DNA of 64,000 nt, taken from the IMG/VR virus record IMGVR_UViG_3300046323_000587, positions 162,481 to 226,480 of that record; one strand, given 5' to 3'. The notes below the pieces were generated by a model. That model worked only from the letters and a program-made list of their open reading frames with translations, did no database searches and was not told where the DNA came from. Shown here in pieces: positions 1-51,374 of the stretch. The position numbers and the translations under genes were made by a program. How positions within the stretch are numbered: position 1 is the stretch's first letter; every line of letters starts with the position of its first letter.

Positions 1-1251
1 TGTTCCGTAAAAAGTTCTTACAGATTCGTTATCTAAATTTCCAAAACTTCCAGCTGGTTGATCTGGTCTCTCAATATTATTAGTAAAAGGGGTTTTAGTA
101 CTTACTAATAAAGGAGAAATATGTTTAGAATTTTTTACATATTTATCAGGTATATATTTATGAGCATTGACACCTTCGTAAATTGATAATGGGTCAAATC
201 TTTTAAGAGATTCTTCATATTGTTCTTTTAATTCATTATTTTTTCTATTTAAATGTAAATCTCTTATTATAGAACTTGCTTCTGGAGTATAAGTGTAAGC
301 ATATTTTTTATCTGGAGTAGCCCAAAATAGTTCTAAATTTTTACTATATTCTGGTTTTACACGTACTTCTCCTTTTTCGGCTCTTTCTGAATTTGATTTA
401 CTTCCACCTCTATAATAAATATCTTGTACTTTACTACCCTTTAATTCTTTTTGTGCTTGTTCTGATTTAGTAGAAAGATAAAGTGCATCTGCTATATCAT
501 CATCTTTTGTATTTAAATCTTTATAATACTCTCTAGCACCAGGAATTTCATCTTTTATTTGTCCATACAATTTACTACCTCTATCAACTTCAATACCTTG
601 TTCTTTTGCTTGTTTAAGAAAATCAGTAAACATTTCAGTATTACTTACATAATCTTTAATAACAGGTTTAAATGTCTTTGCAGCATCTCCAGCTAATCCA
701 AATAATGGTAATACTCCTGCTAATGTCAATGGTGAAATTTTACCTGTTGATTTATATTCTTTCCAAGCATCAGAAGCACCTTTAACATCTCCAATTACTG
801 GTAACATATCTGCAACAGTATTAACAATAGATTTACTTACAGCTTTGTTATCCATTGTTTTATCAAGTTTATCTTTTGTATTAGGAACATTCACATTACC
901 TAATGTAGCAGTAGTATTCTTTTGTCTAGGTAAAAGATTAGCTTCTTGTGATTGTCTTTGAGACATACCAAATCCACTAGCATTACCGCCACGTTCTTTT
1001 TCTATACGTCTCTGAATAGCTAATCTCGTACTCATATCATCACCTTGTTCTTCTGATAGTTTTTCAATCTCTTGTTGTTGTTCTCTTTTATCAGATAATA
1101 AACCTTTATTGATTTTAAATTCAAAATAGCTGATTGCTCTACTATTTTTATGCTTAATAGCATTAGCATACATATTTCTTTCAACTGGTGAAAGATGCTT
1201 ATTAGCACCAACTTGTAATGCTTGTTTATCTCCGTCTTGATATTTATTCAT
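1..1251 (-). CDS. Polymorphic-effector-like protein, runs off the window edge: conserved N-terminal helical domain + pre-toxin-TG-like segment + ADP-ribosyltransferase-like (ART-PolyVal type) domain
   Basis: Not in ORF track; my translation from ATG 1251 is open to base 1: MNKYQDGDKQALQVGANKHLSPVERNMY...VADMLPVIGDVKGASDAWKEY...SKVQDIYYRGG...LFWATPDKKYAYTY...ISPLLVSTKTP. Confidence 0.65.
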   Translation of the reverse strand, partial: MNKYQDGDKQALQVGANKHLSPVERNMYANAIKHKNSRAISYFEFKINKGLLSDKREQQQEIEKLSEEQGDDMSTRLAIQRRIEKERGGNASGFGMSQRQSQEANLLPRQKNTTATLGNVNVPNTKDKLDKTMDNKAVSKSIVNTVADMLPVIGDVKGASDAWKEYKSTGKISPLTLAGVLPLFGLAGDAAKTFKPVIKDYVSNTEMFTDFLKQAKEQGIEVDRGSKLYGQIKDEIPGAREYYKDLNTKDDDIADALYLSTKSEQAQKELKGSKVQDIYYRGGSKSNSERAEKGEVRVKPEYSKNLELFWATPDKKYAYTYTPEASSIIRDLHLNRKNNELKEQYEESLKRFDPLSIYEGVNAHKYIPDKYVKNSKHISPLLVSTKTPFTNNIERPDQPAGSFGNLDNESVRTFYGT

Positions 1252-1256
1252 TGTCG

Positions 1257-3404
1257 TTATTTATTTAATAATTTTATATTCTTTAAGAACTTCTGTTTAT
1301 CAATATTAATCTTATCTTTCTTTAAATCTTTTAATACATAATCAGAGATTTCTTTTCTATTAGACTTATTTTTCACTTTATTAAGAATTGTAGTAATTCC
1401 TGAAATCATTTCTTTAATGTCTGATGTATTCTTTCCTCCTTTACTATACTTTAAAGGTTTTTTAAGTAACAACTCTTTTGGTTTCTTTACTACTTTGCCT
1501 ACATAATCTATCAAATCAGGTTCAATAATAGAGTGAGCTTCGTGTTCAACTGTACCAGGAATTTTATATCTTAGATTGTTCCCAATTTTATCGTACAATA
1601 TTTGTTTTGGTAGAAAAGAAAAATCATTAGTATTTTGAATACCAGTAAAGTATTTTGTTAATTCTGGAATATTATCCATTATCCAATCAGCTGAATTTTG
1701 ATTTGCATTATGATAATTATCAATAATTTCTTTTGTATGGCTTGTTTGAGGTTCTCTATTTAATTCATTTCCAATATGAGTTGTTTTACTTACTTTTTGT
1801 AAAGCGTGAGGAATTTCACTAATTAAATCTTGATAAGAATTTGGATTAACTGTAATCTTGTGTTCTATAGGGGTATAAAAAGCTCTTGTATTATTTTTAT
1901 TTAATTCAATTTCTGGATTTCCTGATTCTTCTAACAGTTGTTTAATCCTAACTTTATGAGAAGGAAGTAAATTTGAGTTAGACAGCAATTTATTTAAATT
2001 ATCTTTTGTCATTTGTTTTATAGAACTTAACTCTATCTTACTTCCTTTTTGAAATTTCATTAAAAATTTAAGTTTGTTTCCTTTTTTATATATTTGATTT
2101 TGTTGTTCTGGTGAACTAGACTTATTTAAATAAGAATTTATTCCAACTGCTGGTAAAGCTACTGCTGGTAATTTATTCATTGCAGAAACAAATTTTTTCT
2201 TGTCTTTAAGGTAACTTAATAAATCTTTTTTATCTTGTGAGAAGTTATTAAAGTTATTGTCTATATCTTGTTCTGTAAGTAATTTATAAGGATCTTTAGG
2301 ATTTATTTGATGTCTAATTTCTTGCATTCTTGCGGATATCTCTGTAGGTTTTAAAAGATATTCAGCATTTCTATAGTTTTTATCTTTATCTAAAATTTCA
2401 TTAAATTCATATAAAGGTTTATCTGAATGTAATTTTTTATAATTATCTCGAATATTGTCTAAATCAGTATTTCCATTTTCTGAAAATCCGTCAAGCAATA
2501 ATTTTTCTTGTTTTGGGTATATTAAATTATTACTTTGAGTTCTATTATGATCTAATTCATGTATTCCAGTATTTTTTATATCTGGCATACTAGGATCTAA
2601 AAAAACATTTGTTTCTGCTTTAACTATTTTATCTGTTGTTTTATTTAAATTAGGTATAGCAGAATATATTTCTTTATTTTCTATTGGAGTATCTCCTAAT
2701 AAAGGATAGTGTACGCCCATATTACCTTGTAATATATCTTGATCCTTAGTAAGTTGTGGTGTAATTGCATTAGTTCTTTTTCTCATTTTAGCTATATCTT
2801 CATTTATATACCCTACTGCTAAGGCCCTTCTTTCAAATTCTGGACTATTAATTTGTTTTCTGTATGCTTCTGTACCAGCATTTAATTCTTTTTGTGCAGA
2901 AGATTTAGTTAAATTATTTTTTAACTCTAAAGCAGCTTCTTTTACTTCTTTACCAAATTGATTTAATTTCTTTTTAGTTACTGTAACAACTGGTTTTACT
3001 ACATTTTTAGCTAAATTGGTTATTTTTTGTACACCTTTTTGAGCTAATTTTTTAACTACTGCTTTACCTAATAAACTTGTACCTCCAGTTAAAGCAGTTT
3101 CAGCTATTTGTTCAAAAGTATCATCTGGATTAATTTTACCTGTTGCCATACCAGTTTTAGCATCAATTAAGCCTTTATTAATTTTATCTTGTCTAGAGCC
3201 TTCTACAACTCTATTTGAAGCTTCTTTAGCTTTTTGTATCAATTCCCTATTAAGAAATACTCCTACATCATTTTTACCTTTACTAGGATTGTTTTGAGAT
3301 TCCCATAAAGAACGTGGTTTGTTGTTTCCTGTACGTTTAATATATTGTTCATAAGTCTCTACTGTTTTAGCAGGAAACTGAAATTTCTTGTATGATTTAA
3401 TCAT
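1257..3404 (-). CDS. Multi-module candidate virion cargo protein with two zincin-like metallopeptidase modules
   Basis: GIHELDH...YLLKPTEISARMQEIR; second degenerate module ISEIPH...VEHEAH; GGK-type tags at the N-terminus, between modules and near the C-terminus. Confidence 0.6.
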   Translation of the reverse strand: MIKSYKKFQFPAKTVETYEQYIKRTGNNKPRSLWESQNNPSKGKNDVGVFLNRELIQKAKEASNRVVEGSRQDKINKGLIDAKTGMATGKINPDDTFEQIAETALTGGTSLLGKAVVKKLAQKGVQKITNLAKNVVKPVVTVTKKKLNQFGKEVKEAALELKNNLTKSSAQKELNAGTEAYRKQINSPEFERRALAVGYINEDIAKMRKRTNAITPQLTKDQDILQGNMGVHYPLLGDTPIENKEIYSAIPNLNKTTDKIVKAETNVFLDPSMPDIKNTGIHELDHNRTQSNNLIYPKQEKLLLDGFSENGNTDLDNIRDNYKKLHSDKPLYEFNEILDKDKNYRNAEYLLKPTEISARMQEIRHQINPKDPYKLLTEQDIDNNFNNFSQDKKDLLSYLKDKKKFVSAMNKLPAVALPAVGINSYLNKSSSPEQQNQIYKKGNKLKFLMKFQKGSKIELSSIKQMTKDNLNKLLSNSNLLPSHKVRIKQLLEESGNPEIELNKNNTRAFYTPIEHKITVNPNSYQDLISEIPHALQKVSKTTHIGNELNREPQTSHTKEIIDNYHNANQNSADWIMDNIPELTKYFTGIQNTNDFSFLPKQILYDKIGNNLRYKIPGTVEHEAHSIIEPDLIDYVGKVVKKPKELLLKKPLKYSKGGKNTSDIKEMISGITTILNKVKNKSNRKEISDYVLKDLKKDKINIDKQKFLKNIKLLNK

Positions 3405-4188
3405 TGTTGTCTAATTTAAATTTATATAAAGAAAATAATTTTCCTCCTTTTGAGTAAGCAGGTATTACAAATGCAGCTCCAGAAAACCCTTTTGCATAAG
3501 TATTGTAATCTTTCCACTGAGCTGTAGACAATTGATTTTTACTATTTGCTTTTGGTTTTGCTGAATATCTTCCCATATCTTGATAAGTAAAATGCAGATC
3601 TTTTGGATTTAATTCATAATCTTTAATAATTTGTTCTCCTTGTTCTTTTAAAACTTCTGGAATTCCAGATACATCTATACCTATTTGTTTACCATTTTTA
3701 TCAGTAAAGAGATAAGTTACGCTTCCTCCACTAAATCTAGAAAAATTTTGATTTCCTGTACTAGATATACTTGTTTCTTGACCTTTTTTTGTTGGAATAT
3801 AATTAGATTTTTGTCCAATTTGCCAACCTGTAGACTTTCCTTTATTATTCCAGTCTATGTTTGCAAAAGAGTTAGATCTAACTGGTAATTTACTATCGTA
3901 ACCTTCTTCGTCTAAATATTTTTTGTTATTTAAATCAATTCCTTTTATATCTTTAAATTTTTTATACCTAACTAAATATTCTCCATTGAGTTGTTTTTTA
4001 TGTTGAGCTATATAAGTATCGGGAGTTTGTGGAATATCTGGTAAAAATATATCTTCGTACTTAGATTTTACTGGACCACTTTTCCAATCACTATGTTGTT
4101 TTGTATTTTTTTGATTTGGTGTAATGTCTCCGTCCATAATAAAATGAGATACACCTAATACATTATTTAATGTACTATCTTTAGACAT
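3397..4188 (-). CDS. Hypothetical cargo-cassette protein (probably the 3' part of a disrupted longer gene starting at 4862)
   Basis: 263-aa ORF ending in YSKGGKLFSLYKFK tag; the upstream sequence reads as protein in shifted frames. Confidence 0.5.
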   Translation of the reverse strand: MSKDSTLNNVLGVSHFIMDGDITPNQKNTKQHSDWKSGPVKSKYEDIFLPDIPQTPDTYIAQHKKQLNGEYLVRYKKFKDIKGIDLNNKKYLDEEGYDSKLPVRSNSFANIDWNNKGKSTGWQIGQKSNYIPTKKGQETSISSTGNQNFSRFSGGSVTYLFTDKNGKQIGIDVSGIPEVLKEQGEQIIKDYELNPKDLHFTYQDMGRYSAKPKANSKNQLSTAQWKDYNTYAKGFSGAAFVIPAYSKGGKLFSLYKFKLDNND

Positions 4189-4862
4189 TTCGTTTTAATT
4201 TAGGTAATACAATTGTTCTTCCTCCTGTAGAGTTATCAAAAGTTCTTTTAAAAGAGTGTAATTCTCCATTTTTATCTTTAGCAACTCTTAACAATTCATA
4301 AGATTCTCTATATTTCTCTTCAGGTGTTTTTGAATTTGATTTTGAGTTTAGTTTTGAATCTGATTTTGAATTGTTGTTAGAAGTAGATTTTTTAGGCTCT
4401 ACTTTAATTAATTTTGATCCTCATCTTTTGTAGTCAATTTATCTCACCCTCGTTTCAATCCTCCTACAACAACAGTAGCGTTATCAGGAGTAAATATCGA
4501 AGTAACTCTATTTACAAATGAAGGTTCTTGATCAGTTTTGCTTGAATTTTTATTCTCGTTTTGAGAGATAAAACTATTTTCTGTAGAACTTTGTTTAAAA
4601 TTGTTTTGAGTGTTTGGTAGTCTATTAAGAGTAATAGGAGTAGTTTTTTGTCTATTTAAAATAGATTTATTTAATTCTAATCTATTTTTATTTGTGTTTT
4701 CTAAATTATTTTGTTTTAGATAATCTTGGTAAGCTTTTTCTGTTTTTGGTCCCCAAGCTCCATTTATTTTTACACCTAAAACAGACTGTATTTTTTTATT
4801 TTTTCAACACCATTTTCATTTATTTTGCCATTATTTTGAAACTTTTCTATAAATTTTTTCAT
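4189..4862 (-). pseudogene. Disrupted 5' part of a cargo gene with a peptidoglycan-binding-like motif
   Basis: ATG 4862 MKKFIEKFQNNGKI; frameshift in A-runs near 4790-4805 into KIQSVLGVKINGAWGPKTEKAYQDY; in-frame TGA at 4444-4446; further shifts near 4415 and 4190. Confidence 0.55.
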
Positions 4863-5185
4863 TGATTTGTTTTAATTAAATTTTAACAAAGTAATACTGA
4901 TATGAGTTTTACATCATTTTTTTTACAATATTATAAATTATTTTATTTACTCTTCCTAATAGCTAGTAGCTTTATTTTGAACCTTAGTCAAATCCTTTTA
5001 TCTTTTCAGTTTCATTTCTATTAGTTTTGTAGTTAAGTTTTAGGTTTTAATTAAGATTTAAAAGTAAAGTTTAAAATTAAATTAGAGTTCAATATTTAAA
5101 AAGTAAAAGATAAAATAAATAGAGTTCTAAATGATAATATATGAGATTTTAATTACTTTATTGAATTAATAGAGTAACCTTATTC

Positions 5186-6115
5186 TTAATATTTATAATA
5201 AGTTTTAATACTAATAAAAGAAGGAAGATTAATATAAAGACATTGATTACGACCAATGAAACCAGATAAACCAGCTTCTGACATATAATTAAATATGGAA
5301 GAGTCATAAACTTGATGTTTAGTATTAATATAGTTCCTTTTTTCATCAAATAATAAACCAAGTTTTTTTAACTTATTGAAGATATTTTTAGCTTGTTGAT
5401 AAGTAACAGATTTAAGTTTTGCTAAAACACTTCTACTTGAAAAAGCAACAGGATTAATTAAATCTTTAAAATTGAATTTAGATAAATTAGAGAAGAAGCG
5501 CGAACCATATTTTGTAATATAATTATCAAAATTCTCGTTTATATGTTTAGTAAGACGAGAAATGATATTTTTATTAGCTTGATTTAATTTTTGCTCACTA
5601 GCTATGAAAATGCCTTTTTCTTTTAATTCATTCTTAACAATTTTATCAATAATAACTTTTTCTTGTTGTTTTTTATTTTGGTCAAGTGCATCTGCAATTA
5701 GAATTTCTTCTAGCATATACAAATCACCACAAGGTACTTTTAATACTCTAGTTTTAGCTACAACGATTTCTGAGTTTTCTGACCAAAATTCGTGAGTACG
5801 AAACACTTTTTTAGTAGCTTGAATAGTAAGATTATTTCCATCTAAAGTAACCCAACCAAGAGCAAGAAGATTTTTAATATGTTTTTTGACCCATTGCTCA
5901 GATGGTGTACGTAAATCACAATCATTTACTACAAATTGATTTATATTTCTAATATCAAGATATTGTGATTTATAGTTTAATATAACACCTCCAACATATA
6001 AAGCTTTCAATTTAAAAAAGAAACAAGTATTACTCATCATAGTATTGTCTAATACCAGATATCTTGATAAACCAACAGGAATAGAAATTTGAGTAACTTG
6101 TTTAATTTGTTTCAT
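5186..6115 (-). CDS. Hypothetical DNA-binding/replication-initiator-like protein with winged-HTH-like segments, inserted in the cargo cassette
   Basis: KKHIKNLLALGWV and SRSVLAKLKSVTYQQAKNIFNKLKKLGLL helices; lacks the cassette tag; flanked by AT-rich spacer. Confidence 0.4.
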   Translation of the reverse strand: MKQIKQVTQISIPVGLSRYLVLDNTMMSNTCFFFKLKALYVGGVILNYKSQYLDIRNINQFVVNDCDLRTPSEQWVKKHIKNLLALGWVTLDGNNLTIQATKKVFRTHEFWSENSEIVVAKTRVLKVPCGDLYMLEEILIADALDQNKKQQEKVIIDKIVKNELKEKGIFIASEQKLNQANKNIISRLTKHINENFDNYITKYGSRFFSNLSKFNFKDLINPVAFSSRSVLAKLKSVTYQQAKNIFNKLKKLGLLFDEKRNYINTKHQVYDSSIFNYMSEAGLSGFIGRNQCLYINLPSFISIKTYYKY

Positions 6116-6173
6116 TTTTATTATTTGTTTAAATGTTAAGAGAGTGTTATGATGTAAATATAACTAAAATAAT

Positions 6174-7172
6174 TTATCTTCTTTTGTCGAAACCAAATTT
6201 TTTTTGTTCTAGTAACAAATATATATAAGGATTTTCGTCTTGTGTATACTGTTTTTGTAAGGAACTTAATTTATTTAAAATTTCTTCTTTAGAATTTTTA
6301 TCTATATTTCTTAACTTATCAAAATCTTTGCTTAAAATTTCTTGTAAATTAGTTTTAAATACAGCTGGAGATCTTTTTTCTAATTCTGGCAATAAATTGA
6401 GGTTATTGATATAATCATCTTTAAGTTTTATTACATTTTTTAAATTATTTTTATCAGATAAAATTTTTAAAAAATTGTCGCTATCTGTAGCAGATTTTGA
6501 CATTTCAGATAAACCTATATCTGAAATATTTTTTATTGGATTAAATTTAGAGCTGATTTGCGAAACTAGTTTATTTTTTAACTGTTTCCCTAAAATAGGT
6601 ATAGTTTTTGCCCCAACAGTTATTAGTGATCCTACATCTGTCACTGGTTCAACTAAATTACTTACACCAGATATAGTATTCTCTAATGTATGTTGTTTAT
6701 TAGCTTCATTTCTTTTTTTATTGTATTGGGTTTGTTGATAAAGCTTTAAATCAGGGTCTTTAGTTTTATTTATCTTACGTTGAGCAACATAGTCTTCCTC
6801 AGTCTTTTCTGGACGGCCTGACACAGCTTCTTTAATATCTGATACAGCTAAACTAATAGAATTTCCTGATAAAGTATTATATAAAGGAATATAAGCTTTC
6901 CAAGAATTTGCATTAGATTGTTTTTCTACTAAATTTGTACCGTCTCTTTGATCTCTTCCAGATAATTCAGAAAGACGTTCAATTTCAGATTGTTGTTCTT
7001 TATTATCTTTAACTAATCCTTTATTAATCTTATTTTCAAAGTAATTTATTAATTTACTATTCTTTTTAGCAACTGCTCCTCTATACATTGCTTGTTCAGT
7101 AGCTGATAAATGTTTTTGAGCACCTTTATTCAAACCACCTAATTGATGTTTTAATATTGATTTTAATTTCAT
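6174..7172 (-). CDS. Paralog of the 1-1251 protein (shared N-terminal domain), different C-terminus
   Basis: GAQKHLSATEQAMYRGAVAKKNSKLINYFENKINKGLVKDNKEQQSEIERLSE aligns with GANKHLSPVERNMYANAIKHKNSRAISYFEFKINKGLLSDKEEQQQEIEKLSE. Confidence 0.7.
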   Translation of the reverse strand: MKLKSILKHQLGGLNKGAQKHLSATEQAMYRGAVAKKNSKLINYFENKINKGLVKDNKEQQSEIERLSELSGRDQRDGTNLVEKQSNANSWKAYIPLYNTLSGNSISLAVSDIKEAVSGRPEKTEEDYVAQRKINKTKDPDLKLYQQTQYNKKRNEANKQHTLENTISGVSNLVEPVTDVGSLITVGAKTIPILGKQLKNKLVSQISSKFNPIKNISDIGLSEMSKSATDSDNFLKILSDKNNLKNVIKLKDDYINNLNLLPELEKRSPAVFKTNLQEILSKDFDKLRNIDKNSKEEILNKLSSLQKQYTQDENPYIYLLLEQKKFGFDKRR

Positions 7173-7176
7173 TGTT

Positions 7177-7494
7177 TTATAATATAAATTTTAATAAAGA
7201 ATTTAACTTACCTCCTTGTTTCCAAGTTTTAAATCTTTTATGCCAATATAAAGGACTAAATGGGTCTTTTGCTTTTGAAGAATCTTTACCTCCCATTCTA
7301 TTCCAGAAGTTATTACGTCTATCTTTATTTTTATGTTGAGTAAAATCTTCCATTCCACGAAATCCTCCTGAAACTATTTTATATTTATCACCTTTCTTTG
7401 CTAATACCTGCCACTTTTTACTTGAATCAGCTGGAGCTGTTTTCTTAACTCCTACTTTATTAAATCCTTTCTTTATATATCTTTCTGGTATCAT
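7177..7494 (-). CDS. Small basic DUF5754/DUF6321-like viral protein
   Basis: KKWQV...KIVSGG.RGMEDFTQHK..DRR..F..R......DPFSPLYW pattern; C-terminal WKQGGKLNSLLKF tag. Confidence 0.55.
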   Translation of the reverse strand: MIPERYIKKGFNKVGVKKTAPADSSKKWQVLAKKGDKYKIVSGGFRGMEDFTQHKNKDRRNNFWNRMGGKDSSKAKDPFSPLYWHKRFKTWKQGGKLNSLLKFIL

Positions 7495-7508
7495 TTTCTA
7501 TTGATAAT

Positions 7509-8303
7509 TTAATTTATTTTAAATTTACTTAAAGAAGAAAGTTTAGCTCCTTTCTTAGCATATAATACACTAGATTTTTGTTTGTTGCTTACTAAACCAT
7601 TCATCATCTCAATAAATTTATTATCCTCAAAAGATTTAATTAAATTTCCCAGTTTCAATCCTTTATGTTTTGATTTAATCAATTCTAAATCTTCTAATTT
7701 AAACTTATCTTCTGGTTTTTTGTTAAGAAACTTTCTCATTCCCATTAACTCAGGATATAATTCGTGTTCTTGTCCATTATTAAATTGATCTACTTCTCCA
7801 GACTTAGTATAACTTTTAATATAATTCTGTAATTCAGAACTTTCATCAAAATGTGTAGAATGAGTAAATTCGTGAACACTTGTACGAGGAATAGATACAA
7901 TACCATCACCTAAAAAATCATTATATTTCTTAATAGTTTTAGGGAAGACTACAACTTGATGTTTATCTTTTAGGTAAGCTCCTGATACACCTTTATAATG
8001 ACGTTTAACTTTTTCAATATCTTCTTTTGTATATGGTGTATCATTAACAGGAGATTTTAAAAACATTTCTCGTTCTATTTCATCTTCAGGTATAACTGAA
8101 ACTGTATTTAATTTGTTTTGAATATTAGATAAAGTTGTATTAGCTTTTTTCTTGTTACCATACAACTTTATCATTTTATCTCTTGTTGTAGGATTATTAA
8201 ACCAATCTTTTACATAATTAAGATGTTCTTTTAAATCTGTTTCAGAATTTACAGAAGTATTTTGGACAGATTTTGTAGGTTTATCTTTGTCAAATTTGTT
8301 CAT
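7509..8303 (-). CDS. Zincin-like metallopeptidase, candidate cargo
   Basis: VHEFTHSTH then QEHELYPELMGMR; C-terminal YAKKGAKLSSLSKFK tag. Confidence 0.6.
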   Translation of the reverse strand: MNKFDKDKPTKSVQNTSVNSETDLKEHLNYVKDWFNNPTTRDKMIKLYGNKKKANTTLSNIQNKLNTVSVIPEDEIEREMFLKSPVNDTPYTKEDIEKVKRHYKGVSGAYLKDKHQVVVFPKTIKKYNDFLGDGIVSIPRTSVHEFTHSTHFDESSELQNYIKSYTKSGEVDQFNNGQEHELYPELMGMRKFLNKKPEDKFKLEDLELIKSKHKGLKLGNLIKSFEDNKFIEMMNGLVSNKQKSSVLYAKKGAKLSSLSKFKIN

Positions 8304-8348
8304 AGCATAAATTTGTTTTATATTGATTTTATTTGATTTATACGATTT

Positions 8349-8606
8349 TTATAAAACATTTGATCCAGAGTTTAACTTATTAATATCTTTACTTAAATCA
8401 GCTAATATCGATTTAATTTCAAGTTTATCTTTTTCTGTAAATGGATTGATTTTTTGAATTTTGTCAAAATTAGGTGTAATCTCAGTTGGGTTGTTTAATT
8501 TGATTCCTGAAATTGATTTTTGGTAAGCTTTTTTTGTAATATTGTCCCAAATACCTGTTTGAGAAATGTTGAGATATTTTTGTAATAATTTTATACGCTC
8601 TTTCAT
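8349..8606 (-). CDS. Small protein with peptidoglycan-binding-1-like N-terminus
   Basis: IKLLQKYLNISQTGIWDNITKKAYQ. Confidence 0.5.
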   Translation of the reverse strand: MKERIKLLQKYLNISQTGIWDNITKKAYQKSISGIKLNNPTEITPNFDKIQKINPFTEKDKLEIKSILADLSKDINKLNSGSNVL

Positions 8607-8626
8607 AATTATTAAATTATTATTAA

Positions 8627-9286
8627 TTAAGCACTAACTTGTGTATTAGGTCTTGGATGTAATCTCCAATACATTTGAGTGTATTTATTCACCATTCTTC
8701 CTATAATATCAGAAACCATCCAATTAGGTATTCCAGAAGGTGTCTCTCCATCTATTTTACAACAACCAAATTCTTCTAAATCTTTTGGATTAGCAGGAAT
8801 AAAATCTACACTAATATATTTAATGTTTTCAGTTGGAGGGTTAAATAAAAACCCATCTTTAAGATTTGGGTGAAACCAGACAAAAGGTTTTGTACGAGTA
8901 AATTTACCATAATCTTGTTGTTTCCAAGTTGGGCCTTTAACTATATTGAATACATATTCTCTATCAACAGTTCCTACAAACTTAATTGGATTTAGAACAT
9001 ATTGAGAAGGTTTAGGTAATTTAAAATGTAGTGTATTATTGAAGGAAGATACATTGCAACATAAACTTAAATCTTGACAATCTAATTCTAAACAATTAAT
9101 AGATTGTATTAATTCATTTTCTTGTAAAGTACCAGATAAAGATAATTGTTTAATTATTGCATCTCTTTCTACTAATATCTCATCTTGTAATTGTTCGTGA
9201 GAATAAGGTTCTTGTAAAGTTGCTCCTTTTAACCCAGCTAAAATATGATTATTAATTGCAGAAGCTATTTGTTCTAGAGTATTCAT
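8627..9286 (-). CDS. crAss-like tail ring/adaptor protein
   Basis: LEQIASAINNHILAGLKG...EQLQDEI...C..LDC and PRPNTQ end resemble crAss-like ring proteins; position in capsid block. Confidence 0.55.
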   Translation of the reverse strand: MNTLEQIASAINNHILAGLKGATLQEPYSHEQLQDEILVERDAIIKQLSLSGTLQENELIQSINCLELDCQDLSLCCNVSSFNNTLHFKLPKPSQYVLNPIKFVGTVDREYVFNIVKGPTWKQQDYGKFTRTKPFVWFHPNLKDGFLFNPPTENIKYISVDFIPANPKDLEEFGCCKIDGETPSGIPNWMVSDIIGRMVNKYTQMYWRLHPRPNTQVSA

Positions 9287-9289
9287 TGA

Positions 9290-10740
9290 TTAAAATTTAA
9301 TTTTATTAAATGAAGATAGTATACCTCCTAATTTAAAAGTCTTATTCATAATTTTTTTAATATTTCTTTTGTTTGTCATTTCGTCAGGTTTAATTTCTCT
9401 ATTAAACAAAGTATTTGCTATTTTAGCAAAGAATTTAGGTTGTTTTTTTGTACTATGATATAATTCATAAGTATCTGTATCTATATCTTCAGAGTTATTT
9501 TCTGCTAAATTTTTCAACTCTTTCCAATTTTTGTTTTTAAATTTTTTTTGTGAATTGTATTTACCTAAATCCTCTAAATTAAACATTGTAGTATATTTTC
9601 TAGCCAACCTTTCATCAGGAATAGATAAATAATCTTTATAAGGTTTTGTTGGTTCTCCATTTAACTGTTCACTTATTTTTTGTTCGATAGCTAAATTTTT
9701 ATGTAAATTTTTAATATAAGCATTTTCATCAGATTCTTTTTTTCCATAGGTAGATTCTAATATATATATATATTTTTATCTGAAAGATTGTTTCCTCCTC
9801 CTGTAGCTGCGTGTGAAAATTCGTGAGTACCTAAATATTTATATATATCTTTATAAGTTCTTTCTACATCTTTAGATTTATTGTAGGGACCTACTTCCAT
9901 AGGAAAAACAAATTCTTTTTTTGAAGGTAAGTTAATTTTTTTTGTATTATTAGAAAAAATTTGTACGTTAGGAGATGTTAAATTGTCTTTTGGGTAATCT
10001 AGCCCTGTATCTTCTAAATTTTTTAATCTTGTACCTATTTGTTTATCATTATATCCAGCAACTTTATTTAATTTTTGACCTCTTTTCGAAGTATAAAAAT
10101 CTATCAATCTTTTTTTATCGGGTTCGTAAGAATCTTTAAAAGATTTTTTATCGGTATAATTTTTTAAATTATAGCCCTCTAATTTTGTAGGTAAAGGTTG
10201 TTGAGATTTACCAGTTAATCTAATAATTTCAGAATCTACATTTTCTTTATGCCAACCAACAAGTTTTTGTTTATATTCTTCAGCATTATTTTTTGCCTCT
10301 TTTAAATTTTGAGTTATTTTTTCTATTTGTTGTTTATCTATAGGATCTAAAGAGTAGTTTTTTGGATCTTCCAATTTTTTAAAAGATTCTTTCCTATTAT
10401 AAAAATCTAAATCTTTTTCTAAGTCTTTTACATGATTTGTATACAATGTATTAACATCTGTTGGAGTTTTTTGTTCGGCTTTTAAATTTTCTAATTCATT
10501 AAGCAAATTTTCTCTATTCATTTTATTCCAAGGGTCTACATTTTCTTGAAATTCTTCTTCAGGTGTATCATAAGTAGGAATATCTGGAGCGTAATAATTA
10601 TTATATTTATCTTTTGAGTCTTTTTTAATATTTCTTTTTCCTTTAATATCTACATTTTTTAGTACAATAGTTGAATTTTGTAAAGTTCCATCAGGTTCTT
10701 GGTATTTTTTAATTTTTTTAAAACTATTTAGTTTTTTCAT
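9290..10740 (-). pseudogene. Zincin-like metallopeptidase cargo gene split by a 2-nt frameshift in a (TA)n tract (ORFs 9757..10740 and 9290..9607)
   Basis: THEFSH upstream; removing one TA at 9760-9773 gives DKNIYILESTYG...YLSIPDERLARKY in frame with the downstream ORF ending FKLGGILSSFNKIKF. Confidence 0.75.
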
Positions 10741-10758
10741 ATCGAATTTAATTTTAAA

Positions 10759-10794
10759 TAAAAAGCCTCAACCCAATGATTGAGTTAAGGCTTT
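10759..10794 (-). terminator. Intrinsic terminator after the capsid gene block
   Basis: AAAGCCTCAACCCAA/TTGAGTTAAGGCTTT hairpin with A-run (U-run on minus strand). Confidence 0.65.
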
Positions 10795-10840
10795 GAATTG
10801 ATTTGTTTTAATTGTTTGTAATAAAGAACTTTAACTAAAA

Positions 10841-11863
10841 TTAAACTTTAAATGCAGCAGCAGCAATAAGAGCAGGAGCAAGTGGAGTTTTATCAAAGAA
10901 TCTCGGAGCAACAAATTTAGTAGCATCAACTGTGGAAAGAACTGTCGCACGATTCAAGAAATCAACTACTGGATTTTGATAAGTTACCAAGCAAGAATCA
11001 TTAACAAAAATTTCAAAGTTACCACTTGTTTCAGCAATACCGTTAACAACACCATTACCACCATTTTGATTGATTCCATTATCATAACTTGACCAAGCTA
11101 AACTTGAATACAAATCGCCTTTAATAGGAGTAGTAAAACGATCAATTGAGTATGGCATACGATCTGCTGTATCAATAAACATTGATTTCAAGTTATAATA
11201 CTCATTTCTACCTGCAAAACCAATTACTTGAGAAGGAACTGTTTGAGTATAAGTAATATATGGAGATACTACATTGTCATCACCAAGAAATTCAATTTTA
11301 ACTAATTTAGCTTGATCAATTGCAGTCAAATCTAAAGCAGTCATTGTAATTGTTTTATTAGCTACAACTGTTGCAGAATAAGGAGCAGCAAGAATAGCTG
11401 TTAAAGAAGGTACAGTTATTAAGTTATTTCCATAAGAAAAAGATTGGAAAATCATTGCATTGTAAAGTTTTGCAAGAACAGTATTAGCTGTATCAGCAGT
11501 ATTTACAACCAATTGAACTACCAATTCTCTAGCTGGATCTCCCATTCTAGTAAAATCAGATTCATTTGAAAAAGAATGAAGAGTAGCTTTCATTTTAACA
11601 ATAGTTCCATTTGGAGTAGACGCACTATAAAAAAAGTTACCTCCAGCAATCAACCGATCTACTTGTTTAGTTCCAGCAACACCTCTATTACCAACTACTT
11701 TGTGTAATTTGTTAATATCAAATCTACCAAAACCTTCAACATCCATATAAGTTCCTAAAAGAGCTGTGGAAGGAGCATAATTTGTATCCCAAAATTTTAA
11801 GGGGAATAATGTAGCATTGTTAATTAATACTTGTTTTGTACCTGTACTAATAAATTGTGACAT
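10841..11863 (-). CDS. Probable auxiliary capsid/structural protein
   Basis: 340-aa beta-rich Ala/Thr protein, P.KG.LY motif, last gene of capsid block before terminator. Confidence 0.5.
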   Translation of the reverse strand: MSQFISTGTKQVLINNATLFPLKFWDTNYAPSTALLGTYMDVEGFGRFDINKLHKVVGNRGVAGTKQVDRLIAGGNFFYSASTPNGTIVKMKATLHSFSNESDFTRMGDPARELVVQLVVNTADTANTVLAKLYNAMIFQSFSYGNNLITVPSLTAILAAPYSATVVANKTITMTALDLTAIDQAKLVKIEFLGDDNVVSPYITYTQTVPSQVIGFAGRNEYYNLKSMFIDTADRMPYSIDRFTTPIKGDLYSSLAWSSYDNGINQNGGNGVVNGIAETSGNFEIFVNDSCLVTYQNPVVDFLNRATVLSTVDATKFVAPRFFDKTPLAPALIAAAAFKV

Positions 11864-11910
11864 AATTTTATTATTATTATTTGTAAATAAATAAATCTAT
11901 TGATATTAGC

Positions 11911-12771
11911 TTAACCAACTTGTGGAGGAGCAATACTCATAGATACATTAGGTTGAGATCCTTGTCTAGGATCACTTGCATTCTCAAAAATTAGTATCAT
12001 CATTTCATTAAGAATTTCTTGACAAATATAATTTGGAAATTCTAGTGTTGCAGAAGTGTCTGTTGATGAACCTGCTAAAGTTTGATCGTTATATTCTGTG
12101 TATGTAAGTTGAATTACTTTTGGAACTCTGATATAACTAATCTCTATTTTTTCAATAGAAAATTTAGGGTGGTTTCCTGTTAATATTTCTATTTCAGCAT
12201 TATTTGCACCCGAAATAAGGTTAGTTCTTACAGTAGTTAAATAAACAGATTGTGCAATATCAGGATTATCAGAAATCAAATATAATACATTAGTATAGCT
12301 GGGTCTTTGATAAAAATCTGTTAATACATACTGATATTGTGAATCTGTAATTCTTCTTGTTTTAATAGCAGGAAATATATCTCCCGGCTGGTAACAATTT
12401 TTTTGTTGTATTGCTTTAAAATATACATTAACTCTTGTAATATGATAATAATCAAGAGGAAGGAGGAATTTAATACCTTGATTAACTGGTGTAATAGTTA
12501 CAGCATTAGATTGGTAATGATCTAAAATATTACCTGTTACCATAGAAGCTATTGCACTTGTAGAAGATTGAATATTTATTGAGATAGTGGTTTTTAATCT
12601 AGATAAATCATCAGTTGCTTGTTGATTTATTTCAAAACCATTATATTTTTTATTAATGTATTGATTTAAAGCTTTGTTTGCAAAATAATTCCATTCTTCA
12701 AGATTAAGAGAAGGAGCATTGACCTTCTTTTGTTCAATTAAAGAATATTCAAATAACTCCTTTGTTGTCAT
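11911..12771 (-). CDS. crAss-like ring (head-tail adaptor) protein
   Basis: APSLNLEEWNYFANKA...FEINQQATDDL...ISYIRVP...LEFPNYICQEI...ENASDPR. Confidence 0.7.
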   Translation of the reverse strand: MTTKELFEYSLIEQKKVNAPSLNLEEWNYFANKALNQYINKKYNGFEINQQATDDLSRLKTTISINIQSSTSAIASMVTGNILDHYQSNAVTITPVNQGIKFLLPLDYYHITRVNVYFKAIQQKNCYQPGDIFPAIKTRRITDSQYQYVLTDFYQRPSYTNVLYLISDNPDIAQSVYLTTVRTNLISGANNAEIEILTGNHPKFSIEKIEISYIRVPKVIQLTYTEYNDQTLAGSSTDTSATLEFPNYICQEILNEMMILIFENASDPRQGSQPNVSMSIAPPQVG

Positions 12772-13917: not shown

Positions 13918-15306
13918 TTAGATATTTTCTTGCATAATAAAACCAGCATAAGGGTTGAATACAGCTACACCAGAGTAACCAATGATAGATTTAGTTGTAC
14001 CGTCAAAAGTAGAACCCATTGTACCAGAAGTCATACCATCAACTCCACCTAAACCTGGCAAAGTACCTTCAATCATTTCACGTCCTTTAAGAGTAAACAT
14101 AGAAACATTTGCACGTCCTTCTACCATTGTAGTATCAATAAACAAAGCATAACCATATTTATCATAAATTTCAGAAAGAATTGTATCAACAGTAAAGTTG
14201 ATAGTATTTCCCATCCATTGATAAGCTTTAAATGAACCACCAACTGTAATGTCTCCACCATTTTTAGTCCAGTAATAACCTCCATCAATAGCAGTAGACC
14301 TTAATTTATCTTCAAGAGCTTTAGAAATTTGTTTATATCCAATCCAGTTACAAACTACTGTGATATTATTTCCTGTTGTTTTACCTGTTTTTTTAACAAT
14401 ACTATCAATAGCATCTTCAAAAATAGAAGTAGTTAATTTTGTGTAGAAAAATTTATCGCAATAACGTTCAATTTGAGCTAATACCCCGTCACCTGAATCT
14501 AAAGCAGCTCCTGTAATACTATCGTGATCTAAGCAATTGCCGTTAATATCATGGTTATCTCTGCCTAACAACATTGAATTTTCTCTCATATAAAGGAATT
14601 GATCCAAGATTGCTTTTGCAGGTTGCTCCATTTTAAAATATTGTTTATTATCAGCTTGTCCAGCTTCAAAATAAATCATTTTAGCATCATTAGTCCAGCT
14701 ACCATCAACACGTACACGAGTAATATATCCACGGTGTTCTTCTAATTTCAACATACCTTTTTGATTACGTTGATCAACAGAACCATCAGATACGATATTT
14801 GAACGGAACATAGTTCTACGACCTCTTGTGGTGTATTGAGTATTCAGTCCTCTTGACATATCATTGTTTACTAAAACACAAGTATATCTCCAACGATTGT
14901 TATTCATTTTTTCTGGCGCTTGGATAACACGCAATTGAGTTACATTGTCTTCCAAAGAGAAAGTATCATTTGTTGCATAATAATTTTTCTCTAAAATCAA
15001 TGCAATAGGTTGTCTATTAGATCCACTTGAAGTACAATCTTCCATAATCGTTACTTTAGGAATCATATTAGTTTCAATTCTCCAAGTAAATTGCATTGCA
15101 TTAACAGATTCATAACTAGATTTACGATCTCTTACAATAACTCTACCTAAACCTTGTGTAATTGTAGAAATTGTCAAATCTTTTCTTGTTCTAGCCATTA
15201 AACCTAGTGCAGTTGTTCTTTTACCTAAAAGAGAGCTAATATTTTGTATGTTTTGTGTTGTATTCTGCAAATTTTGTGGTAAATCACTTAATTCAATTAC
15301 TCTCAT
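13918..15306 (-). CDS. Major capsid protein (crAss-like, HK97 fold)
   Basis: 462 aa; FTWRIE, N..WRYTC.L, EEHRGYIT..RVD.SW, GDGVLAQIE, GVAVFNPY motifs; follows acidic scaffold gene. Confidence 0.85.
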   Translation of the reverse strand: MRVIELSDLPQNLQNTTQNIQNISSLLGKRTTALGLMARTRKDLTISTITQGLGRVIVRDRKSSYESVNAMQFTWRIETNMIPKVTIMEDCTSSGSNRQPIALILEKNYYATNDTFSLEDNVTQLRVIQAPEKMNNNRWRYTCVLVNNDMSRGLNTQYTTRGRRTMFRSNIVSDGSVDQRNQKGMLKLEEHRGYITRVRVDGSWTNDAKMIYFEAGQADNKQYFKMEQPAKAILDQFLYMRENSMLLGRDNHDINGNCLDHDSITGAALDSGDGVLAQIERYCDKFFYTKLTTSIFEDAIDSIVKKTGKTTGNNITVVCNWIGYKQISKALEDKLRSTAIDGGYYWTKNGGDITVGGSFKAYQWMGNTINFTVDTILSEIYDKYGYALFIDTTMVEGRANVSMFTLKGREMIEGTLPGLGGVDGMTSGTMGSTFDGTTKSIIGYSGVAVFNPYAGFIMQENI

Positions 15307-16669: not shown

Positions 16670-18325
16670 TTAAATTAGAGTCAAAACTTTGGTTTTAGTA
16701 TCGTAAGTTAATGTTCCTACTGAGGTACCTAAATTTGTAGTTGCATCTCCATAACCTGGAGATACAGTAGTTGTAGATTTATTTATAGTTTGAGTATTTA
16801 CAAGAGTTCCTCCTCCAATAGAAGGAGTAAATGAATATACAGGAGTAAGAGTTAAACCTGAATATTGTAAAGCTTGTATTGTAATAGCTCCTGTACCAAC
16901 AGAAGTGTCCCACAAAGCTCTTATATCTAATTTAATTTGTGAAACTTTTGGATGTTTGGCAATCATAGTTTTAAAATCTATTACAAAAAATTCTTCTTTT
17001 GTTGTTGTAATATTAGGAGAACTTCCGCACCATACAGCATAAAATATATTATTTCCACTAATATTTTCTTTTAATTGAACATCTGTTGCAAATCCAGCAA
17101 TAAATCCACTATTAGGAATACGCTGTTCCATATAAGGAGTAAATTGAGAAAACATTAATCTAGTAAGTAAAACTGTTGTAGAACTAGCTGCTGTCCAAGT
17201 AAATTTTAAAATGACTAAATCTGTTGCAGGCCCAGGTATACATTTACCTTGAGTATTAGCAAGAGTTTGTTTATTTGCACTAAACCAAGTAGTTGCTTGA
17301 AGATCTGCGTCTGCTTGTGAAACTAAAGAAGTAAATTGACCTAATGTTGTAGAAATTGTTTCTGAACTTCCAACTAATGGAGCACTACAATTATTTTTTT
17401 GTACTAATTCTGTTATTACAACACTTCTATAAGTAACAATATCAATACAATTTAATCCAGCTTTTGCTTGTTGAGTAGCTAAATTTAAAGCTTGATTATC
17501 AGCATCAATTTGAGATATATAAGAATTAATTGTACCTGCTGATACAGTTGATGTATTACTACTAGGTTGTTTACCTGCTCCACAGTTTGCTGTAAAAGTT
17601 TGATCGGTATTAGTATATGTAATAGGTGTACAAACTCCTTGAATATTGGCTATAGATTGTCTAGTTCTATTTAATTCTGCAATAGCTTTATTATCTGCAT
17701 CAATTTGTGAAACGTAAGATTGAAAAGAATTTGCTGCAATATTAACTGTAACATTGCTAGGCGTTGTATTAATTGGACAAGTACTTCTTAGTAATGTAGA
17801 AGTTTGTAGTACATTATAAAATATTGGTAATGGAGTACAAGTACCTTGAGCATTTGCTAAATTTTGTTTATTGTTATTCAAGTAATTAATTGCTAAATTA
17901 TTTGCTTCAATCTGAGTTGCTGCTTTAAATGTATTTGCTGCAATTGTAATTGTTTCATTAGAACCTATATAACCAATAGCACAATTATTTCGTTGAATTG
18001 TTGTAGTTTGAATAACATTTCCAAAAGAAATTGAGCACACAGTTTCATCTTTTTTAGTTCTATTATCTAATAATATTTTAGCTTCTTCTATTGTTGAAGA
18101 TATTAAATTAGCTAAATTAGTAATAGAAATTGAATTTGGTATTATAGTTAAAATGCTTTTTTCTTTTGTTATTGTTTCTAAATCTGTATATGTAAAAAAT
18201 CCATCGTTGAGTCCACTACAAGTATAATTCTTCCAAGCAAATGATTTACGAGATTGCAAAGATTCAATTGTAATTGTAGTACAAGGATTAGATTTAATAC
18301 AAGAATAATTAATTTTAGTTATCAT
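16670..18325 (-). CDS. Fibre/decoration protein with four DUF5977-like repeats
   Basis: Repeated (R/K)NNC...GS...AA..F.S..SQ.DAD..A.......Q..AN.QG.C units. Confidence 0.7.
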   Translation of the reverse strand: MITKINYSCIKSNPCTTITIESLQSRKSFAWKNYTCSGLNDGFFTYTDLETITKEKSILTIIPNSISITNLANLISSTIEEAKILLDNRTKKDETVCSISFGNVIQTTTIQRNNCAIGYIGSNETITIAANTFKAATQIEANNLAINYLNNNKQNLANAQGTCTPLPIFYNVLQTSTLLRSTCPINTTPSNVTVNIAANSFQSYVSQIDADNKAIAELNRTRQSIANIQGVCTPITYTNTDQTFTANCGAGKQPSSNTSTVSAGTINSYISQIDADNQALNLATQQAKAGLNCIDIVTYRSVVITELVQKNNCSAPLVGSSETISTTLGQFTSLVSQADADLQATTWFSANKQTLANTQGKCIPGPATDLVILKFTWTAASSTTVLLTRLMFSQFTPYMEQRIPNSGFIAGFATDVQLKENISGNNIFYAVWCGSSPNITTTKEEFFVIDFKTMIAKHPKVSQIKLDIRALWDTSVGTGAITIQALQYSGLTLTPVYSFTPSIGGGTLVNTQTINKSTTTVSPGYGDATTNLGTSVGTLTYDTKTKVLTLI

Positions 18326-41600: not shown

Positions 41601-41736
41601 GACGTTGTTCTTGCCCCATTCTATCTACTACTTCAGGAATACCTAAGTTATTTGCAAATCCTGAACTACCTTCAAATATGTTCTGAATTGTATTAAGACT
41701 TGTATCTGTATTTTTATTTCTTTTTCTTAATATCAT
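38659..41736 (-). CDS. Receptor-binding/adhesin protein with four LamG-like domains
   Basis: Repeated xxFNG/FDG starts, FTIDGWVY, WIHFAVVRSGTTLRVYLN, GYISNFRM. Confidence 0.75.
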   Translation of the reverse strand: MILRKRNKNTDTSLNTIQNIFEGSSGFANNLGIPEVVDRMGQEQRPVQQGRSYLFNGSTDYAVSGTSTTFETATNQFSMICDLQLIGAGGIVFNKASAFGGYKSYFFRYVSVDTMQLYFDNGVNWVGFNLPVANLATELNRIVARWSNITATASDCRAWVNGTEVSVTIGTSSGGFNSGFNISYLTTAPLCIGVNMNELGALGAPYLSGSLANLFAWNTALSVSDCIRLSDRTKPILQLPNIANLMFGYKCDEGDGTLGINTLGLGGNTNLTLNNIVPATFHQQRTDGFGADWQNQFGFTPIVRFNGLTNASGINLGNGANAQIVQHQAFTFHTWINIPSATGKAILSNYFNVGNGTQFQFGTAGTNITLFIPNIGYVYNGADNIVANTWFHIAWVRENTGTDGCKMYVNGNFRGRFTYANTVIPTSVMYIGTDILNAVGFTFDGRMQNICFVPSAVWTEGGSTTIGTNVFTPPTTWADYQNLEATNPSKLAIYTQNIVNNPLNLPITFVDITSLLIPRNENNPIDDALGRPLFYRNRAKYNAQLRQSNCLTFDGTNDFVTLPSVDIAASDNFIIEGNFMLATIAQFQNIISYRDIKIYYNNGTGFLYGVNGLTGTPNIFAPQDNVWYRYRIQRQAGDITYSINGIAMLTVAYANAFTGGFNNIGQSNDPLYLNGRYASHFMSINGTTIFDFPLQEGAGDRIFSRAGGHIGTLNNFAFPAAWANRQDVVHSNLIQGFDASVFFNGGTTQNLSLSDASFNIGTDDFTIDGWVYIKDTSNRGIFQLSSVAGGLDSTAGQPSIALGFAGTVVGLYRNGLTIITNTPPINQWIHFAVVRSGTTLRVYLNNVQISTETSSTNFTYTNLVVGGYFATNTLWNGYISNFRMFVGRALWTTGGYALPTTEADYSAEIANRVLFLRGLNDRNTNPKTITNNGTTLQVYKPITATNPQTQSNYNQTWHNEAETLFRQYQAPEVITRDSANYMFTGGGASNNLPYSTILSNRSSKIKANTSQDISNRRKATFKLKK

Positions 41737-51227: not shown

Positions 51228-51281
51228 TAGCCTTTATTTTTTTATTTAGTGACACCACTTTAAATTAATTCTTAAAGCAAT

Positions 51282-51349
51282 GCTCTTATAGTTTAATGGA
51301 AAAATCTCTGATTATTCAGATGTTCTTGGTTCGATTCCAGGTGAGAGCA
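51282..51349 (+). tRNA. tRNA-like gene with truncated anticodon loop (pseudo-tRNA)
   Basis: Acceptor GCTCTTA/TGAGAGC, D-arm TAGTTTAATGG, T-arm CTTGG-TTCGATT-CCAGG; anticodon stem TCTGA/TCAGA closes only TTAT. Confidence 0.7.
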
Positions 51350-51374
51350 ATAAACTTTTTAATACCCCAAAACT

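Follow-up and report, generated by a model that had tools for sequence, protein, structure and literature searches.

What are small genes with toxin-like and enzyme-like domains doing among the tail genes of a large phage? The question is raised by the last 64 kb (positions 162481-226480, the whole stretch analyzed here and hereafter the window) of the 226,480-bp virus contig IMGVR_UViG_3300046323_000587, which comes from freshwater metagenomes and has a completeness rating of ~95%. The window opens on part of a gene whose product we call P0001, and a first-pass annotation of the sequence had seen in this open reading frame (ORF) a polymorphic toxin, with a conserved N-terminal domain, a pre-toxin segment and an exchangeable tip resembling an ADP-ribosyltransferase (ART). 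We consider it rather likely that window positions 1-10740 and the adjoining genes outside it are instead a late-gene block of cargo proteins, packaged in the virion, ejected from it and of the modular polyvalent type; the block is best filed as a new, split-gene variant of the phage polyvalent proteins and the crassvirus cargo proteins. Few known phages are as abundant as the crassviruses, and to our knowledge little has been described of what their virions bring into the host besides DNA and a giant RNA polymerase.

Judged by its structural genes, the phage is crAss-like. The window holds tail ring protein 2 (R2) and a crassvirus major capsid protein (13921-15306; Pfam E 2e-22), the muzzle protein gene (Pfam E 7e-36) and ring protein 1 (R1; genome 160117-160800, sub-threshold in Pfam) lie just upstream of the window, and the portal resembles gp20 of crAss001 (E 1.4e-19). 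The phage has ~27% G+C and, at 226 kb, is far larger than crAss001 (103 kb), and its source is freshwater and not the gut. A second IMG/VR assembly is 99.96% identical to the contig across 21 kb; the sole difference is a 9-bp indel at window ~5105-5113, in the non-coding stretch past the 309-aa ORF. An alternative genetic code was considered and dropped, since table 11 keeps all long ORFs open, the largest of them 3833 aa in length.

The genes of the block all lie on the strand of the structural genes, the neighbors of P0001 abut or overlap one another, and the cargo-type genes sit between R2 and R1, close to the muzzle gene. In crAss001 the genes for the cargo proteins C1 (gp45) and C2 (gp46) likewise belong to the tail module, beside ring and muzzle genes, and come after the muzzle gene (Bayfield et al., 2023, PMC10172136), and in L007, a 105-kb crAss-like contig, a P0001 homologue stands two genes past the muzzle gene and is followed by topoisomerase IB (Topo IB). 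Similarity to gp45 is also found directly: a 126-aa ORF immediately after the muzzle gene (genome 153872-154252; L001 7875-8252) matches gp45 379-437 (E 3e-12), and the 263-aa ORF of the block weakly matches gp45 457-514 (BLASTP E 7e-5), which is part of the portal-bound domain. The crAss_CARG1 family is sub-threshold on the 263-aa ORF (Pfam E 0.069) and had no match in the hidden Markov model (HMM) scan of the genome, and the 332-aa and 715-aa ORFs match neither gp45 nor gp46. From the tail-gene position, the gp45 matches, the gene position in L007 and the giant polyvalent-type ORFs found elsewhere in the genome, we infer packaging and ejection as the most economical reading. The proteins would be stored in the capsid or the tail barrel and would enter the host together with the DNA or before it. 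Each is made up of short modules that recombine among related phages; a module encoded by its own gene in one phage can belong to a fusion protein in the next, and module and gene borders coincide with a basic aromatic-[K/Q]-x-G-G linker, hereafter the junction motif. R2 and R1, which are neighbors in the relative L007, stand ~10 kb apart here with cargo-type genes between them, as if the block had been inserted into the tail module or moved within it.

Directly downstream of P0001, and overlapping its stop codon, lies the gene for a 270-aa Topo IB (genome 160790-161602; L001 14793-15602; minus strand, outside the window; Pfam E 1.4e-16), which has a junction motif near its C-terminus. Topo IB also adjoins the P0001 homologues in L003, L005, and L007. 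Poxvirus virions contain topoisomerase IB, and by analogy the enzyme may be packaged here too. A patatin-like phospholipase gene (genome 152916-153818; L001 6919-7818; Pfam E 2e-24) lies two genes past the muzzle gene, in the midst of ORFs with a junction motif, and its product is a possible membrane-attacking cargo enzyme.

The complete P0001 gene encodes 709 aa (genome 161602-163731, minus strand), in the order leader, N-domain, TG-like segment, helical cassette, degenerate ART-PolyVal core, "REHLGKWDW" module, Gly-rich segment, junction motif and K-rich tail. What had been read as a variable C-terminus behind the N-domain is the middle of this protein, cut by the window edge. The N-domain itself stood, with 39 of 70 residues (56%) identical between P0001 and the 332-aa ORF, and the motifs quoted in the first-pass annotation are present in the sequence as described. 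The DKINKGL of the 715-aa ORF, which had been taken as a share in the same domain, proved to match over just 7-10 residues and no better than expected by chance (BLASTP E 2.0; N-domain HMM E 1.1), and across the whole genome the N-domain HMM matches only P0001 and the 332-aa ORF. At the DNA level the two copies are only 63% identical, by which the pair is an old duplication; a recent duplication or gene conversion was dropped on the same ground. The 332-aa ORF reuses the N-domain on a different body. Relatives are few: an exhaustive search of 1.84 billion representatives with P0001 gave only 13 matches, to which a word-indexed search added three, and the N-domain has no more than six relatives in that set, all of them on phage-like contigs. 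Word-indexed searches with the N-domain alone and with the 263-aa ORF each retrieved only the query itself, and tblastn of P0001 against 50,697 phage records gave no match. The N-domain and the K-rich tail module have in common a short helix-like motif, L-[ST]-x-x-[EQ]-[RQ]-N-[ML]-[FY]-x-A (P0001 17-35 and 683-700; also in P0010), which may be due to chance, the HMM cross-match reaching only E ~1.5.

The ART-like pattern proposed at first was a good lead. Seven homologues can be aligned with P0001 across both flanks of the disputed region, where they are 40-50% identical to it, and all seven match ART-PolyVal (PF18760; gathering score 31.2 bits) over the P0001 middle at E<=0.1, with a best E of 1.9e-12 and with 43 bits for P0003. 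P0001 is the only aligned member without such a match, at E<=1 for the protein and at E<=10 for its locus in the genome scan. The flanks are invariant on both sides of the core in P0001 and its homologues, and the "PLL-S-K-P" strand is kept. Because of this identity, the invariant flanks and the common strand, the middle of P0001 is, on the alignment, descended from an ART-PolyVal domain and shares its descent with bona fide members. In agreement with this, the ESM Atlas feature search on P0001 placed ART-PolyVal clusters first (0.88), and nine of the ten rows of the Atlas structure search were NAD+-utilizing ART-type proteins (ART-PolyVal, PARP, diphtheria toxin, RES) and one was unannotated, at template-modeling scores of 0.30-0.41. 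Searches of PDB sequences with the ART and TG alignments gave no match.

Ancestry is not activity, however. In ART-PolyVal, strands 1, 2, and 5 contribute the active-site residues His, Tyr, and Asp, respectively (Iyer et al., 2017, PMC5512222). The His site reads Y-H-G-[ST] in 7/7 homologues and Y-Y-R-G-G, with R281, in P0001; the Tyr site (G-x-G-x-Y) holds Tyr in six homologues, Phe in the seventh and W310 in P0001; and D523 of P0001 aligns with Asp or Glu in all seven, its placement on strand 5 coming from a low-confidence model. Since the family HMM failed and two of the three catalytic-residue tests failed, the P0001 domain is, as far as its residues tell, a degenerate member. With R281 and W310 in place of His and Tyr, canonical NAD+-dependent transferase activity is improbable, so the domain is probably inactive in that sense and would act as a binding or structural module, or with altered chemistry. 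The pattern first noticed in this ORF is thus confirmed as ancestry and lost as an active tip, the HMM being silent, His and Tyr being replaced and the domain being internal. It is still conceivable, if unlikely, that P0001 is an active, injected, host-modifying ART in which R281, W310, and D523 form a working variant that uses NAD+ or a related substrate. In ARTs of the R-S-E class NAD+ is bound by an Arg in strand 1 (Iyer et al., 2017, PMC5512222), P0001 retains its acidic residue and the "PLL-S-K-P" strand, and the ORF is intact and identical in the second assembly. Yet the S-T-S and E-x-E motifs of R-S-E enzymes were not seen by eye around the aligned positions, the relatives keep the His (7/7) and the Tyr (6/7), the Pfam model no longer recognizes the P0001 domain, and the phage has another ART-PolyVal, with an intact H-G-T motif, in a 2342-aa ORF.

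The variability around these domains is real and of a particular kind. The modules that recombine among relatives are the N-domain, the TG-like segment, the helical cassette, ART or other inserts, the K-rich tail, DUF5754 and HExxH. In a scan of all relatives with six module HMMs, the N-domain stands before the TG-like segment, helical cassette and ART in P0001 and P0002, before an unrelated 255 aa in the 332-aa ORF, and in P0010 after the K-rich module that is terminal in P0001, so that it does not always carry the same C-terminus and the downstream parts vary, as first proposed. In P0010 the tail module and the N-domain are joined via a junction motif; in the phage studied here these modules are unfused. 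The cassette from the helical part to "REHLGKWDW" also occurs behind other N-termini, including an amine oxidase in P0003, and in relatives the helical cassette is split by inserts of 45-235 aa between its two helical halves, among which Pfam found only a weak GNAT match, in L007. A DUF5754-like region seems, by eye only, to be fused into a 237-aa protein after the junction motif in L007. Such reshuffling is of the polyvalent-protein kind and differs from the swapping of toxin tips on a constant stalk: several effector-type domains occur in variable combinations across phage-encoded relatives, P0001 itself having a single recognizable one, which is degenerate. The idea of injected host-modifying effectors with interchangeable tips therefore survives in its modularity and loses its active ART tip with the two catalytic residues; the setting would fit virion proteins that are ejected and that may affect the host.

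Could the block proteins stay behind in the cell that makes them, as tail assembly factors, scaffolds, decoration proteins or late intracellular proteins, the N-domain being the trace of a local duplication? Their virion location is something we infer, the two N-domain copies do lie 5 kb apart in one genome, and the prediction of a complex of the portal with residues 120-263 of the 263-aa ORF scored 0.00, which gives no verdict and counts neither for nor against binding. We nevertheless regard this as quite unlikely, since the N-domain is joined to other partners in other phages (P0002, P0010), ART-PolyVal, Topo IB, and HExxH are enzyme families characteristic of polyvalent proteins that are delivered (Iyer et al., 2017, PMC5512222), and parts of the demonstrated cargo protein gp45 have homologues here.

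The cargo reading has to be held against several points that weigh the other way. The virion presence and delivery of the block proteins are judged from gene context only, and that context departs from crAss001, whose cargo genes come after the muzzle gene, whereas the block lies between R2 and R1. P0001 has no detectable similarity to crAss001 gp45 or gp46 and no match of its own in Pfam, PHROGs or PDB sequence searches. Its ART fold would follow from the sequence alignment together with weak leads: AlphaFold2 (AF2) with the family alignment gave a predicted local distance difference test (pLDDT) of 46, which is unusable, for P0001 190-585 and of 53 for residues 227-397 of the canonical homologue P0007, and hhalign of the P0001 core against the ART profile of the homologues aligned the last strand only. 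Fold searches on the poor P0007 model gave no significant match; Foldseek against PDB had KptA/Tpt1 and tankyrase as its best matches (E 0.3-1.4, insignificant), and the wide VIA-align search reached Z<=3.6, its long alignments including RES, RhsP2, ParT, diphtheria toxin and exotoxin A; in these searches ART-fold proteins predominate in the longer alignments. Lastly, the family is tiny, so the record of module shuffling comes from a small number of sequences, and several of these lie on short contigs.

The TG-like segment brings us to the pre-toxin motif itself. It is kept in seven proteins in the alignment, and the Pfam family matched by the largest number of these segments is PT-TG (PF14449; cut-off 23.5 bits, 68 profile positions), in three of the seven, at E 0.01-0.1 and 13-16 bits and over profile positions 2-27 only. 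There was no PT-TG match on P0001 at E<=1 and none in the genome at E<=10, so the motif reported in ORF 1-1251 is, going by these scores, a likeness to PT-TG and not membership. The most hydrophobic 19-aa stretch of P0001 starts at residue 172 (mean Kyte-Doolittle 1.39), inside this segment, which recalls the predicted transmembrane helix of crAss001 gp45 (PMC10172136), a Gly-rich or hydrophobic N-terminal segment being common to both. That no small immunity-like gene stands beside ORF 1-1251 was correctly noted at first and now holds beyond the window edge, the next gene being Topo IB. A bacterial-type polymorphic toxin, that is, a trafficking N-terminal part, PT-TG, an active toxin that can be exchanged at the C-terminus and its matching immunity protein, is accordingly very improbable: the Gly-rich "P-h-h-G-D-h-K...T-G" segment ahead of a toxin-family domain, the parts that vary behind a conserved N-terminus, the three sub-threshold PT-TG matches and an Atlas lead for the 332-aa ORF that includes a viral cluster with PT-TG (score 0.80; Atlas gave no firm lead for this ORF) do recall such toxins, but the immunity gene is missing, Pfam found no secretion or trafficking family (LXG, RHS, linked to type VI or type VII secretion, etc.) on P0001 residues 1-200, the PT-TG matches are partial and 7-10 bits below the cut-off, the ART-like part is internal and without catalytic His and Tyr, and the setting is a phage structural module.

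The feature that runs through the whole cargo block is the junction motif. Its core, aromatic-[K/Q]-x-G-G, is basic and commonly followed by K-L-x-S-L-x-K-F, and a fuller form is often G-G-K-L-x-S-L-x-K-[FY]-Q-x-G-G. Six full copies, C-terminal or internal, are found in six block proteins (HMM E 1e-9 to 1e-6), and seven proteins, three of them in the window, start by eye with what appears to be the second half, K-[YF]-Q-x-G-G, within their first 20 residues. The strict motif has nine matches in nine proteins of the minus-strand tail/cargo block (genome 138.6-172.3 kb; 10,519 aa) and none in the remaining 55,214 aa of the genome (binomial p 7e-8). In a 21-kb stretch of L007 all copies lie downstream of the muzzle gene, in homologues from other metagenomes the motif occurs at module borders and termini, and crAss001 gp45 has looser Phe-x-x-G-G versions. 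No description of the aromatic-[K/Q]-x-G-G motif was found in the sections of Iyer et al. (2017, PMC5512222) drawn on here.

A flexible linker, a protease site and a docking peptide are the candidate roles. Tentatively, the junction could be a dedicated signal of an environmental crassvirus clade, either the site cut by a maturation protease, which might be among the three HExxH proteins of the block, or a peptide for docking to the tail barrel or portal, and the cargo set could be a "distributed polyprotein"; we put this forward as a minority view. Modules would be fused, split or swapped at junctions with packaging unharmed, and leaders, C-terminal stubs and linkers would be trimmed after G-G. 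This would explain why genes end 10-20 residues past a G-G, why neighboring genes start with the second half of the motif and why a module that is free in one phage can be fused in the next. HMM scans of the genome for Peptidase_C48, Peptidase_C39 and Peptidase_S78 gave no match, and no candidate G-G-specific or prohead protease was identified in the genome.

The features of the block are collected in Table 1, and a few need comment. The HExxH region of the 715-aa ORF is a candidate zincin-like peptidase module: Atlas leads to peptidase, LPD23 and MPTase-PolyVal clusters, and the L003 homologue has a weak match to the DUF6782 metallopeptidase family; the MPTase-PolyVal and LPD23 HMMs had no match in the genome scan. 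The 332-aa and 327-aa ORFs matched nothing in Pfam or PHROGs. The stretch at 4188-4870 comprises a short ORF with a junction-type leader, a shifted frame with the PG_binding_1-like motif and a third frame that ends at the start of the 263-aa ORF. Contigs from two other runs and the second IMG/VR assembly all carry exactly this sequence, so an assembly error is improbable and the frame breaks are probably genuine, reflecting either a pseudogene or programmed or transcriptional slippage.

Table 1. Features of the putative cargo block, in window coordinates (aa, amino acids; residue numbers are those of the protein named).
Feature	Window position	Strand	Remarks
P0001, first 417 codons	1..1251	-	gene extends 879 bases past the window start, to genome 161602
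P0001 N-domain, residues 15-72	1036..1209	-	common to the 332-aa ORF; BLASTP E 2e-18, HMM E 7e-33
P0001 TG-like Gly-rich hydrophobic segment, residues 142-194	670..828	-	likeness to PT-TG, sub-threshold (alignment; Pfam on homologues)
P0001 helical cassette, residues 194-283	403..672	-	precedes ART core; module HMMs
P0001 degenerate ART-PolyVal core, in-window part, residues 281-417	1..411	-	alignment; Pfam on 7/8 aligned members; ESM Atlas
P0001 R281 codon	409..411	-	aligned with the catalytic His position
P0001 W310 codon	322..324	-	aligned with the catalytic Tyr position
P0001 "PLL-S-K-P" strand	82..117	-	conserved strand
715-aa ORF	1257..3404	-	HExxH (HELDH, 2547-2561); junction motifs at 2043-2090 (internal) and 1428-1448
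263-aa ORF	3397..4188	-	residues 164-219 (3532-3699) weakly like the portal-bound domain of crAss001 C1 (gp45); ends in junction motif 3415-3456
Coding-looking stretch, three frames	4188..4870	-	junction-type leader; PG_binding_1-like motif past A7 run near 4800
309-aa ORF	5186..6115	-	only weak winged-helix, replication-initiator-like matches; without junction motif
332-aa ORF	6174..7172	-	junction-type leader 7134-7172; N-domain residues 17-74 (6951-7124); then ~255 aa unrelated to P0001
105-aa ORF, DUF5754	7177..7494	-	Pfam E 4e-9; ends in junction motif 7186-7224
264-aa ORF	7509..8303	-	HExxH (HEFTH, 7860-7874); ends in junction motif 7518-7562
Tail ring protein 2 (R2)	8627..9286	-	upstream edge of block; Pfam CrAss_Ring_2 E 2.9e-11
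105-aa ORF	9290..9607	-	ends in junction motif 9293-9337
327-aa ORF	9757..10740	-	junction-type leader at N-terminus; HExxH (HEFSH, 9811-9825) near C-terminus

How does the block compare with known systems? The polyvalent proteins (Iyer, Burroughs, Anand, de Souza, and Aravind, 2017, PMC5512222; ART-PolyVal, PF18760, of the Tox-ART-HYD2 clade) share with it their phage origin, the reshuffling of multi-module proteins, an ART-PolyVal-derived domain, zincin-like HExxH, GNAT-like and other companions and a predicted delivery with the DNA, and the 2342-aa ORF, with ART-PolyVal and a helicase, is a classic example in the same genome. Those described there are single giant proteins, whereas here the modules are mostly separate small genes (85-715 aa); moreover, the ART of P0001 lacks His and Tyr and goes unrecognized by the Pfam model, and the MPTase-PolyVal and LPD23 models are silent. 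With crAss001 the difference is again one of splitting, gp45 being one 842-aa protein whose recognizable parts lie here on the separate 126-aa and 263-aa ORFs, and enzymatic domains such as the ART-like, Topo IB and HExxH domains of the block are not reported for gp45 and gp46.

Phage T4 offers a further parallel. Its Alt protein and internal proteins are packaged and injected, and their capsid-targeting leader is removed by the prohead protease. As in the working model for the block, they are packed via a short terminal signal and injected with the DNA, and Alt is an ART. Alt, however, belongs to the R-S-E clade and has another leader and cleavage motif, and HMM scans found no prohead-protease homologue here.

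Outside the block, the giant polyvalent-type ORFs lie at genome 97478-116002 (L008). They include the 2342-aa ORF, in which the ART-PolyVal with intact H-G-T motif is combined with a PIF1/UvrD-type helicase, an 1824-aa ORF with a PD-(D/E)XK nuclease and a 1446-aa ORF with a 2OG-Fe(II) oxygenase match slightly under the Pfam cut-off. Further along the window, a 551-aa ORF (16673-18325, minus strand) has four DUF5977 repeats (E 2e-57) and a 1025-aa ORF (38662-41736, minus strand) has Laminin_G_3/concanavalin-like domains (E 1e-29); both are probably fiber or receptor-binding proteins. ARAGORN reports a tRNA-like gene at 51281-51350 (plus strand) with an undetermined two-base anticodon, and an Rfam scan of window 1-12000 gave no match.

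The degenerate ART domain of P0001 is a caution that likeness to a toxin domain at the level of patterns does not imply an active toxin. For the crassviruses, the block ties cargo genes to the polyvalent arsenal, through ART-PolyVal, topoisomerase IB, zincin-like modules and the nearby patatin-like phospholipase, and it presents polyvalent modules split and reshuffled. The junction motif that marks the whole cargo block is the most interesting by-product of the analysis: if it is a packaging or processing signal, the cargo of uncultured crassviruses would become recognizable from sequence alone, and the motif would provide a handle to load foreign proteins into crassvirus virions.

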